Assembly: GCF_006345805.1 (NCBI RefSeq)
Contig: NC_043019.1
Coordinates: forward strand, 26,845,360 to 26,909,359
Length of the DNA: 64,000 nucleotides
Origin: Octopus sinensis
Taxonomy: Eukaryota
Reading direction: 5' to 3'
Below the pieces are notes generated by a model. The model saw only the letters and a list, made by a program, of their open reading frames with translations. It made no database searches and was not told the origin of the DNA. A program made the translations under genes and the position numbers. Numbering within the stretch: the stretch's first letter is position 1; each line of letters starts with the position of its first letter. Positions 8,901-14,900 of this stretch are shown here, piece by piece.

Positions 8901-11900
8901 CCTTGTGAGTGGATTTGGTAGACGGAAACTGAAAGAAGCCTGTCGTATATATGTATATATATGTATATGTGTGTGTGTGTGTGTATGTTTGTGTGTCTGT
9001 GTTTGCCCCCCTAGCATTGCTTGACAACCGATGCTGGTGTGTTTACGTCTCCGCCACTTAGCGGTTCGGCAAAAGAGACCGATAGAATAAGTACTGGGCT
9101 TACAAAGAATAAGTCCCGGGGTCGATTTGCTCGACTAAAGGCGGTGCTCCAGCATGGCCGCAGTCAAATGACTGAAACAAATAAATGAGTAAATGAGTAT
9201 AGAAGTAAAAGACATAACTAAAATCATAAAAGGTGTAATTGAACCCGCAACCATGTGGTTGGGAAGCAAACTTCTTACCACACAGCCACACCTATAATAA
9301 GCATATAAAAAAACCTAAACATACATATAAATAAAGAAATATCTACCTTATTTCCATAAAGTCCTGCTGGGCCACTTTCTTTCGTAGAAGGAACTCTGAC
9401 ACTTTCCCCTTTTCTGCCTGCCTCACACGCAGGCAAACACACTCCAAACCAGGGACTGGGCTATACTCTGTAGAGTGGCAACTGATGCTTCGAGATCTTC
9501 ATCTTTTAATCCTGGTTTATCTCCCTCTGAAAGATTAGGAACACATTTGGAAATTCAGCAAGAGAAATCAGAGTTTAGCCCCCTCTATACCGATCCATCT
9601 GAGACCACCTCCGATTCTGTGACATGAAACTGGTTATTTAAAATTGTTTGTATTTAAATTAAAACCTTCTTTCCTAATTTGTTATATCGTGAATCCCAGC
9701 TTAATCCTTTAGAATATAAACTGGTTTATATTCCTAATAGTAACCTCTTTACAGAGTGTACTGGGAGCTTTTTGCATGGTGCTTGCATGTGTGAGGTCAC
9801 TGAGAAACTCATAAGACAAGGTCCTTTAACTAAGTGTGGTAGGATGTAATATTGAGGAAAATGGGTTTGTGCCAAGCGTAATACAAAGGGATAGGAATAG
9901 GTCTCTTGCTGAAGAGGAGATACATGACTACCCGAGTAGGAAACAGAGGAAGGATGGTGAAAGTGAGGTGTTTGGACTTATCTTCAAGGTACATAAAGCT
10001 GGGTAGAGAGAGAGAATAGAGACATCATCATCATCGTTTAGCGTCCATTTTCCATGCTGGCATGGGTTGGACGGTGCAACTGGGGTCTCGGAAGCCAGAA
10101 GGCTGCACCAGGCCCAGTCTGATCTAGCAATGTTTCTACGGCTTGATACCCTTCCTAACGCCAACCACTCCATGAGTGTAGTGGGTGCTTTTTACGTGCC
10201 ACCAGCACAGGTGCCAGATGAGGCTGGCAAACGGCCACGATCGGATGGTGCTTTTTACGTGCCACCGGCACGGAGGCCAGGCGAGGCTGGCAATGGCCAC
10301 GATCGGATGGTGCTTTTTACATGCCACCGGCACGGAAGCCAGTCGGGCAGTAAATGAAAAATGGCTGAGTGGATAGGTAGGTCTGTAAGAGTGTGAAAGG
10401 AGAGATAGCGATTAGAAAAACTGTGTGTGTGTGTGTGGTGTGTGTGTGTGTGTGTATGTTTGTGTGTCTGTGTTTGCCCCCCTAGCATTGCTTGACAACC
10501 GATGCTGGTGTGTTTACGTCTCCGCCACTTAGCGGTTCGGCAAAAGAGACCGATAGAATAAGTACTGGGCTTACAAAGAATAAGTCCCGGGGTCGATTTG
10601 CTCGACTAAAGGCGGTGCTCCAGCATGGCCGCAGTCAAATGACTGAAACAAATAAATGAGTAAATGAGTATAGAAGTAAAAGACATAACTAAAATCATAA
10701 AAGGTGTAATTGAACCCGCAACCATGTGGTTGGGAAGCAAACTTCTTACCACACAGCCACACCTATAATAAGCATATAAAAAAACCTAAACATACATATA
10801 AATAAAGAAATATCTACCTTATTTCCATAAAGTCCTGCTGGGCCACTTTCTTTCGTAGAAGGAACTCTGACACTTTCCCCTTTTCTGCCTGCCTCACACG
10901 CAGGCAAACACACTCCAAACCCAGGGACTGGGCTATACTCTGTAGAGTGGCAACTGATGCTTCGAGATCTTCATCTTTTAATCCTGGTTTATCTCCCTCT
11001 GAAAGATTAGGAACACATTTGGAAATTCAGCAAGAGAAATCAGAGTTTAGCCCCCTCTATACCGATCCATCTGAGACCACCTCCGATTCTGTGACATGAA
11101 ACTGGTTATTTAAAATTGTTTGTATTTAAATTAAAACCTTCTTTCCTAATTTGTTATATCGTGAATCCCAGCTTAATCCTTTAGAATATAAACTGGTTTA
11201 TATTCCTAATAGTAACCTCTTTACAGAGTGTACTGGGAGCTTTTTGCATGGTGCTTGCATGTGTGAGGTCACTGAGAAACTCATAAGACAAGGTCCTTTA
11301 ACTAAGTGTGGTAGGATGTAATATTGAGGAAAATGGGTTTGTGCCAAGCGTAATACAAAGGGATAGGAATAGGTCTCTTGCTGAAGAGGAGATACATGAC
11401 TACCCGAGTAGGAAACAGAGGAAGGATGGTGAAAGTGAGGTGTTTGGACTTATCTTCAAGGTACATAAAGCTGGGTAGAGAGAGAGAATAGAGACATCAT
11501 CATCATCGTTTAGCGTCCATTTTCCATGCTGGCATGGGTTGGACGGTGCAACTGGGGTCTCGGAAGCCAGAAGGCTGCACCAGGCCCAGTCTGATCTAGC
11601 AATGTTTCTACGGCTTGATACCCTTCCTAACGCCAACCACTCCATGAGTGTAGTGGGTGCTTTTTACGTGCCACCAGCACAGGTGCCAGATGAGGCTGGC
11701 AAACGGCCACGATCGGATGGTGCTTTTTACGTGCCACCGGCACGGAGGCCAGGCGAGGCTGGCAATGGCCACGATCGGATGGTGCTTTTTACATGCCACC
11801 GGCACGGAAGCCAGTCGGGCAGTAAATGAAAAATGGCTGAGTGGATAGGTAGGTCTGTAAGAGTGTGAAAGGAGAGATAGCGATTAGAAAAACTGTGTGT

Positions 11901-14900
11901 GTGTGTGTGTGTGTGTGTGTGTGTGTGTGTGTGAGAGAGAGAGAGAGAGAGAGAGAGAATATAATCCATGCAGTTAATGTGTTAATCCTTATTATGATCA
12001 ACAACTATTGACAAATTTCTATAATGTAAAATTGATTATTATTTTGGCCCACTTTAACACCACCTCACGGCTCATGGGTGTCTTTGGCAGAGTTCACTCT
12101 GTTGCAAGCATTTAAACCAGGCTCCCAACAGGGGTCATTGTAGTGGTGTGTCAACATCCTTTCATAATTCCTTACGTGTCAAAAGAATGAAAGTAAACTT
12201 GCTACAGAAATGTTTCCTCCACTTTTCTAACATTTACAGATTCCAATCCAACAAATGTCCTACCACAAGGACTACACGTCCTATTCCTGTCCCAACAATT
12301 TCTGGAAGCGTGCCAATATCACAAGGTCATCATCCAGTCGGGCATCTTGCCCAAACCATAGCAACCCTTCCACACCAAATGTCCCGATCGAATGATGAGG
12401 CATAAACGTCTGCCTTGGCTTTTAGTCACATTGGTCTTTCCTTAGCTGAAGCATCTCATCTGTGTACACCATGACAACAGCAGTTTCCTTATCGAACTGA
12501 ATGATCCTGGCCATTGACAGTTTGTTTGTTCATCTGCTCAGCACCGAGTGATATTTGCTGTTGATGCAATAAGATTCATTTGCCAAAAGATTTCACATCC
12601 ACCACGCTTCATTCCATGATTTCAACATAATTCTGGCTCAGGTGATTACATGCAATTTAACCCTTTCGTTACTGCATCTATTTTGAGATGCTCTGTGTTT
12701 CTTTCAATTATTTTAAATATAACAAAGAATTTAGTAAAATAACTTAGTTATCATTCAGCTAGTATTAGGAACATAAATTGTGACTAAGGTTTGGTGGAAG
12801 ATTTTAATTCAGAACTTATAAAAACAAGACATTTGTACTGAGAGCCACAGCCGGTTTCAGCCGGGTTGGTATCAAAAGGGTTAACCCATGACTAGGACCC
12901 TGACGGGTGCTATTACTCCAGGCCTGAATAGACCTGGGAACAACAGTGGCTAAGGGGTTGTTTTGTTTCATATTCCTCAAGACCCTGGAACTCCCAAACC
13001 GGAGTCCCACTCCCAGATGCAGCTTAAAGTCACAGCCAAGACAAGAACATCCAAAGATACTTACCACCAATGCCTATAACGTAGATGTTCTCCCCTTGTC
13101 CCTCTTCAACTCGAGCCTTGATTATCTCGGCAAGGGAATCATACTCTTCACTGGTTGGACTCACAAGAGCCATCTAATGGAAAGAGACAGATAACAAGAG
13201 AGGCAATCATTGGGAGGAACAGAAATTTACATGTATACATTGTTACCATGACAACAACTTGTAATGTAACACATCATGTGGCTGTGGTAATTCAGCTTAA
13301 CTTTGATGGTTCAGAGGAGAATAATTTGAAGTGGATATTTATTTATTAGAAAATTACTATTTTTAAATCTCACAACGAGAGATATTCAGCAACAGTACAC
13401 GTGCTTGATACCGCTGCTGATGACTGAGAACTCATTAGCCGTCGACCGCCGCCGCCTCGTGCCTGACACACGGAAACACACACTCGTACTCGATATTGCC
13501 GCTGTAGCTTGGTTTAGGACGAATGTTGCTGTAATTTAGCCCCAGGAGACATCATCTCCAGCTGGCTATACGACATGATCTATGTCCTTATATTTTTGAA
13601 TAAGGGAATCTAGCACCCCCACTCAGCTCAAAACAATATCTGTGTATTGCGATTTTTGGGTTAATTCACTTCATCAGCACAGAATAATTGTTTGGCTAGA
13701 GGTGGCGCTGCCAAATTCCCATCTGAAATATATAGTTTTCAAAGTGACAACCAGTCACTGATCTATAAATTAGAAAATTACTATTTTTAAATCTCAAAAC
13801 GTGAGATATTCTGTGCCGATGAAGAGAAATAACCTGGAAATCACGATACACAGTTATTGTTTTGAGCTGAGTGGGGGTGCTAGGTTCCCTTGTTCGAAAA
13901 TATAAGGACACAGATCGTGTTGTATAGCCAGATGGAGATGATGTCTCCTGGGGCTAAATTACAGCAACATTCGTCCTAAACCAGGACTGCCACGTTATGT
14001 TGGCAAATAATCTTTACAGGATATTTTATTGTCACAAATCTGGAACTAAGGACAAGAGGTTAGATTAGAATGTTGCAAGAAAGAATCACAAGATGAATTC
14101 TTCAAGCTGAGCCAACCAGTAGGAGACTTGGGGGTAGACCAAGAACAAGATGGTTGCTTCTGATAGAACCCTATGGAGGAGGGGCCTGTGAATTCTATCC
14201 CATGACCCTGCCAAGAATAGTGAGTAAAAAAGATGAAGGAATGGATTCCATGTCCCTAGTCTATCAAAGTCTCGTGTAGATTTTGAAAACAGTACAAAAG
14301 ACTAATAAAACATCTATCATTTCCACAGTGTTCCTACTGCTTACACATGAAAAACATTTACAGCCTGATATTTCAGTGACTGACTTAATTATGGTCACAG
14401 AGCAGTGCTGGCAACAGAATATGAATGCCCACTTTTATGATGCAGGGGCTGGTCCTTCTATTAACTCACAAAATATCTCAAGGGAACATTCATTATTTAA
14501 TGTTCCTTTTTCCATGCTGGTATGGGTTGCATGTTTCAACAAGAACCGTTGACCCAGAGGACTGTGCCAAGCTCCTGTGTTTGCTCTTTCATGGTTTCTA
14601 CAGCTGGATACCTTCCCTTTTCAGCATAATTCTGGCTTAGGTGGTTACATGCAATTTAATCCATGGCTAGGACCCTGACAGGTGCTATTACTCCAGGCCA
14701 AAATATACCTGGGAACAACAGTGGCTAAGGGGTTGTTTTGTTCCATAGTCCTCAAGACCCTGGAACTCCCAAACTGGAGTCCCATTTCTCTGGATGTTTG
14801 TTTCATGGCATCAGCACTGGTGAGGTACCAAGTACTCACAAGACAGAACCCCACCACCACCACCACCACCACCACCACCACCACCACCACCACTTCAGAT

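Follow-up and report, generated by a model that had tools for sequence, protein, structure and literature searches.

The stretch analysed here is a window of 64,000 nt from contig NC_043019.1 of Octopus sinensis, and all coordinates are positions in this window. On its minus strand it carries six coding exons of a GTPase, GTPBP1, the gene extending past the left end of the window, and the third coding exon of this gene is present in two tandem copies, 3A and 3B, the second of which is, we believe, probably an artefact of assembly. The product obtained by splicing exons 1-2-3A-4-5-6 aligned colinearly with residues 94-392 of 'GTP-binding protein 1' in PDB entry 9ypg (chain jj; E = 1.5e-139; the structure library holds GTPBP1 without GTPBP2, so that this match does not separate orthology to the one from orthology to the other), with no gaps other than one of a single residue and one of two residues. 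The same product matched the Pfam family GTP_EFTU (E = 9e-24) and is approximately 78% identical to mammalian GTPBP1. The colinear alignment and the GTP_EFTU match thus bear out the gene name that had been assigned in a sequence-only reading of this DNA.

The two copies of the duplicated unit lie head to tail and were found by a repeat finder, by self-BLAST and by direct comparison (Table 1). The latter two methods gave 1470 identical positions out of 1471, with no substitutions and one indel, in agreement with the 1471-nt tandem period and the coordinates reported earlier. The sole difference between the units is a CC in the left copy against a CCC in the right copy, as read on the plus strand. 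A single extra G at 10438 separates the copies, and the junction reads ...AAAAAC(TG)8-G-(TG)8TATGTTTG. The left border of the unit is ...gtata/(TG)8TATGTTTG (here and below, a slash marks a boundary) and its right border is ...AAAAAC(TG)20(GA)13; the tract at the junction is a hybrid, made up of the start of the right tract and the entire left tract. The G at 10438 is templated by neither flank, throws the two halves of the junction tract out of phase and can also be read as a missing T. That the breakpoint junction lies inside (TG)n, as had been claimed, was verified by reading C(TG)8-G-(TG)8 at this position. The homology common to the two breakpoints amounts to 16 nt of perfect repeat, or approximately 38 nt if imperfect TG-rich sequence is included.

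The interspersed repeats of this region, which we take to be octopus-type short interspersed elements (SINEs), include one at the left breakpoint. A full-length SINE, running from 8782 to approximately 9200, spans this breakpoint, and the (TG)8 tract is its internal microsatellite; the SINE copies at 1996-2366, 38945-39300 and 55751-56124 align continuously with it from 8782 to approximately 9180. The right copy of the unit, beginning at 10439, starts only at the internal TG tract of the SINE. Because the identity between the copies persists for 1.2 kb past the SINE, we trace the half element at 10439 to the duplication itself and reject the independent insertion of a 5'-truncated SINE as its source. 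The arrangement described earlier, with the full SINE in one copy and its 3' half in the other, therefore stands, in plus-strand order. The SINE heads also form inverted arms: two 61-nt arms, at 9233-9293 and 10704-10764, each lie 53 nt downstream of an exon-3 donor, and both are complementary to a single 61-nt arm (84% complementarity; Table 1), the predicted duplex having an energy of -87.5 kcal/mol compared with -29.7 +/- 4.1 kcal/mol for shuffled sequences. The arms of the nearer pair are 384 nt apart and loop out no exon, while pairing of the far arms, 1855 nt apart, would skip 3B.

Exons 3A and 3B have identical splice sites, as had been reported, with both acceptors reading ctaatctttcag/AG and both donors AAG/gtagat. 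The final base of exon 2 opens a new codon (phase 1), and the first base of exon 4 completes the last codon of exon 3; splicing in the order 2-3A-4 is in frame. Direct reading gave the lengths previously assigned to the two exons, 181 nt and in frame for 3A and one C shorter for 3B, and likewise yielded both of the stops predicted for 3B: splicing of 3A to 3B reads AGA GGG AGA TAA (R-G-R-stop), and splicing of exon 2 directly to 3B reads ...VWSVFACV-stop, the latter stop depending on one base, CC as opposed to CCC. As with the stop of a poison exon, the premature stop that follows inclusion of 3B lies more than approximately 50 nt ahead of a later exon junction, and it precedes at least three such junctions, with exons 4, 5 and 6 lying downstream, and because of these junctions the general rule leads us to expect that mRNAs containing 3B would be targets of nonsense-mediated decay (NMD). 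The stronger statement of the sequence-only reading, that a premature stop is the only possible outcome of the second copy, does not hold up, since it hangs on one base that is most likely an error of the consensus; if the missing C is such an error, exon 3B is identical to 3A.

Comparison of the whole window with itself revealed a second two-copy tandem duplication, in intron 5 of GTPBP1 and 5 kb from the first, so that both events fall within a stretch of 8 kb in the same gene. The unit of this twin duplication is 412/413 nt, and its copies differ by no substitutions and by one 1-nt deletion (GGAAGC compared with GGAAAGC), which is again in the left copy, as in the exon-3 duplication. Borders in microsatellites of the same motif, a lack of substitutions and a single 1-nt deletion within a run of three are thus common to both events. 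A signature shared in this way points to one systematic process, most simply an error of assembly or gap-filling, and two independent real events of such youth within 8 kb are very unlikely; we infer that the assembly process is their common cause. No other two-copy tandem duplication was found in the 64 kb down to approximately 75% identity, satellites and the SINE-internal 62-63-bp repeats aside.

In real mutation, long tracts change first and substitutions are several times commoner than indels. The differences between the copies follow the reverse of this order. A7 and C6 tracts are identical between the copies of the exon-3 unit, A12 and (AT)19 tracts are identical between the copies of the twin (3406-4256), and a minisatellite, a 62-bp variable number tandem repeat of 2.5 units, is also unchanged, whereas the differences, in both events, amount to the loss of one base from a run of three, together with the slip of phase at the exon-3 junction. 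Because the faster-mutating tracts are unchanged while the 3-nt runs differ, the CC/CCC deletion is most likely a consensus error. An origin of CC/CCC as a mutation after the duplication, or as an allelic difference brought in by unequal exchange between homologues, is unlikely on the same grounds, the faster tracts being unchanged and single-nucleotide polymorphisms (SNPs) being absent. The differences are of the sequencing-error type and free of haplotype SNPs, as is found in false duplications, and a false duplication of the haplotype ('heterotype') kind was rejected, as the copies show no SNP-type differences. In the two satellites of the window, singleton variants comprise 1-column indels and substitutions in the ratios 25 to 25 and 3 to 3, a share of indels consistent with an assembly whose repeats still contain some indel errors.

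Exon 3 occurs once, between exons 2 and 4, in three related mollusc-like loci (L002, L003 and L004), so that a duplicated exon conserved in relatives, as a poison exon would be, is not found. These loci are distant (68-70% identity on exon 3), and all that their single copy shows is that an ancient origin of the duplication does not apply. When proteins were searched, the exon-3 peptide returned only three distant relatives, with 68-80% identity, and the exon-4 open reading frame (ORF) gave a best match of 90% identity, covering the exon only, in a collection that yielded no sequence from the same species or genus. Neither the exon-4 ORF nor the junction-spanning ORF was on record when looked up as an exact sequence, and an exact 40-mer scan of metagenome contigs, in which either CC or CCC was allowed, found no match.

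Table 1. Exons of GTPBP1 and features of the two tandem duplications, in window coordinates.
Feature	Position	Strand	Remarks
GTPBP1 coding exon 1	17553-17663	-	ATG at 17663; donor AAG/gtaaag
GTPBP1 coding exon 2	13065-13173	-	Phase 1 end; last G plus AG of exon 3 encodes Glu
GTPBP1 coding exon 3A	10818-10998	-	181 nt; keeps the frame between exons 2 and 4
Exon 3B	9347-9526	-	180 nt; same splice sites as 3A; in the assembled sequence, premature stop whether spliced to 3A or to exon 2
GTPBP1 coding exon 4	7074-7320	-	Bears P-loop GNVDAGKS
GTPBP1 coding exon 5	4832-4927	-	
GTPBP1 coding exon 6	2713-2951	-	Gene runs on past left end of window
Unit, left copy (exon 3B and 1-nt deletion)	8968-10437	none	1470 nt
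Extra junction G	10438	none	Between the copies
Unit, right copy (intact exon 3A)	10439-11909	none	1471 nt
Left-breakpoint (TG)8, SINE-internal	8968-8983	+	Runs on as imperfect TG-rich stretch
Right-breakpoint tract	11894-11958	+	(TG)20 then (GA)13
CC/CCC site	9449-9450	+	Only difference between the units (CCC at 10920-10922)
Single SINE-head arm	8788-8848	-	Pairs with 9233-9293 and 10704-10764
Twin duplication, intron 5	3406-4256	none	(AT)13-X-(AT)19-X-(AT)19

Judged on the sequence as assembled, the reading that we favour, with a probability of about 0.6, is that the second exon 3 is a false exon gain, and the possibility of an artefact, which the sequence-only reading had itself raised as an alternative, is thus now placed ahead of a real duplication. 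We favour it because of the twin event, the error-type differences, the lack of older events, the single copy in relatives, the conservation of the gene and the published record of false exon gains as a type of assembly error (PMC9516828). A fixed, frame-breaking duplication in GTPBP1 is unlikely a priori, because the protein is conserved and its loss harmful: biallelic loss of human GTPBP1 is pathogenic (PMC10806450), and its loss in mouse leads to neurodegeneration under tRNA deficiency (bioRxiv 10.1101/2020.09.03.281675). A local error of assembly, gap-filling or patching would have written the 1.47-kb stretch between the two (TG)n tracts twice. By way of conjecture, a long-read filler whose alignment had broken at one microsatellite may have been appended to a contig ending in the other, and a gap-filling or patching step using such a broken read alignment would account for the breakpoints as well as for the additional errors in the left copies; a de Bruijn-graph loop through the microsatellite is an unlikely route, as the perfect shared repeat is only 16 nt. 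The missing C of 3B would then be a residual 1-nt deletion error of the consensus, and the animal would have one exon 3 and an ordinary GTPBP1 gene. As in the published false exon gains, an exon with its flanks stands side by side twice in one gene and the differences are of the error type (the 'homotype' class), but here there is no gap between the copies and the breakpoints fall exactly in microsatellites of the same motif, and, while that class was defined by read depth and k-mer multiplicity, our comparison is one of sequence alone (PMC9516828). Several observations weigh against an artefact. False duplications are mostly separated by gaps (Ko et al. 2022; PMC9516828), whereas there is no N anywhere in the window and the exon-3 junction is continuous sequence. 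With so little homology in common, a normal overlap or k-mer assembler would not be misled, and a specific patching or gap-filling step must be assumed. Both exon-3 breakpoints lie in (TG)n, for which the chance is approximately 1e-5 given that such tracts of at least eight units make up 0.38% of the window, and both breakpoints of the twin lie in microsatellites of the same motif, for which it is approximately 2.5e-4; breakpoints of this kind are also a signature of replication slippage or unequal exchange. The consensus is not grossly noisy, since long homopolymers have the same length in both copies, and the window contains genuine-looking young arrays, one of a 63-bp unit in 4.2 copies (exact run of 177 nt) and one a 226-bp satellite (exact run of 881 nt), from which slippage may be active in this genome.

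The same observations make it possible, at somewhat less than even odds, that the duplication is real and very young, having arisen by slippage or unequal exchange between the SINE-internal (TG)n and the (TG)20 tract 1.47 kb away. Tandem duplication through short homology is well established as a mechanism of mutation, and head-to-tail copies, breakpoints that share one short repeat and a hybrid tract joining the start of the right tract to the end of the left are found here as they would be after a real mutation of this kind; in addition to the gapless junction, the microsatellite breakpoints far beyond chance and the other young expansions in the window, derivation of the copy from the full element is shown by the half SINE at 10439. 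A real origin would nevertheless require that 8 kb had undergone two independent events, or a single complex one, so recently that not even (AT)19 or A12 has been altered, and would have to accommodate a junction G templated by neither flank, the disruption of a highly conserved gene and the lack of older events of the same kind in 64 kb. Such a duplication would probably be polymorphic, or heterozygous in the sequenced animal. Because the splice signals are identical, both copies would be spliced in by default, leading to a stop three codons into 3B and hence to NMD, and the allele would be a hypomorph or a null rather than a regulated switch; even then, CC/CCC would most likely still be a consensus error and mRNAs with 3B only would encode the normal protein. 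The arrangement resembles pathogenic intragenic exon duplications, of which the dystrophin gene provides an example, in that an out-of-frame exon is duplicated in tandem and the frame is destroyed when it is spliced twice, although those have been shown in patients by direct tests and this one is known from assembly sequence alone. Far less probable is a functional role, which had been suggested by describing 3B as a candidate poison exon: we consider it extremely improbable that 3B is a regulated poison exon, or one half of a newly arisen mutually exclusive pair with 3A, tuning GTPBP1 output through NMD. Whenever 3B is included, as assembled, translation would stop prematurely with three or more exon junctions still to come, the length of 181 nt is not a multiple of three, so that double inclusion breaks the frame as in mutually exclusive pairs policed by decay, and the two identical 61-nt arms could compete for the one downstream arm, in the same geometry as the competing RNA structures that have been proposed at the birth of mutually exclusive exons (PMC6071210). 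However, zero divergence leaves no time for regulation to have evolved, exon 3 is not duplicated in L002, L003 or L004, identical splice signals predict constitutive double inclusion, and the near arm pair, which loops out no exon, should outcompete the far pair; with a second duplication of the same signature 5 kb away, the description as a poison exon is unsupported. Tandem duplication of an exon with flanking intron, a length that is not a multiple of three and the duplication of one stem arm, so that two arms compete for one partner, are all features of mutually exclusive exons with competing structures (PMC6071210), but the known pairs are old, diverged, conserved and coding in both members, whereas here the copies differ by one base and the pair is absent from relatives. 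Similarly, the conserved poison exons of genes for RNA-binding and splicing proteins are cassettes whose inclusion gives a premature stop upstream of further junctions, but they are conserved, often ultraconserved, and regulated by the product of their own gene, whereas 3B is an unconserved copy of a constitutive exon. If the duplication were real and both exon copies intact, the missing C being a consensus error, it would be a mutually exclusive pair caught at birth, produced by (TG)n exchange, policed by decay and already equipped with competing SINE-derived stems able to loop out the second copy, a combination that we regard as very improbable.

The region upstream of GTPBP1 is rich in repeats. 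A low-complexity block of CAT/CAC-type trinucleotides lies at 18192-18501, approximately 0.5 kb upstream of the start codon, and contains, on either strand, ORFs rich in His, Asp or Met; approximately 2.3 kb upstream of exon 1 a satellite occupies 19969-23805, with a unit of 202 bp in approximately 18 copies of approximately 94% identity. The numerous 'ORFs' within this satellite are translations of the repeat, and half of its singleton variants are indels. In the mollusc-like loci L002 (4234-4560) and L003 (4219-4545), a Josephin-domain gene is found approximately 5.5 kb upstream of GTPBP1 exon 3; our window, with its much longer introns and intergenic spacers, gave no Josephin match over the 46 kb that lie upstream of GTPBP1. 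In human, JOSD1 is a neighbour of GTPBP1.

With regard to the other arrays of the window, the one in intron 4 (6582-6848) comprises 4.2 copies, 98% identical, of a unit of 63 bp, its exact run lying at offset 63, and looks like a recent local expansion; the unit occurs only approximately 2.4-3.4 times in other SINE-like copies (1294-1442, 10184-10342 and 51956-52167). The 226-bp satellite lies at 53989-55436, in 6.4 copies, its exact self-match at offset 226 corresponding to roughly five identical units in a row, and it is adjoined by a 185-bp array at 56263-57000. An array at 28540-29379 is built of 22-bp units in higher-order repeats of 149/171 bp (77-90% matches) and reads as a Ser/His/Ile-rich ORF of 279 amino acids that is almost certainly no gene. 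Two ORFs of transposase-like appearance, at 30.7 and 33.3 kb, gave no Pfam match, and an Rfam scan of the window gave no match.

If the duplication is real, the locus offers a rare snapshot of an exon duplication of age zero in a conserved ribosome-rescue GTPase, and could show how the splicing machinery handles two identical exons before regulation evolves. If it is an artefact, which is the reading that we favour, the locus is a warning: annotation would give a frameshifted or 'low-quality' GTPBP1 model, and, as the nearby twin suggests, the assembly may contain many false duplications bounded by microsatellites, inflating counts of young exon and gene duplications.

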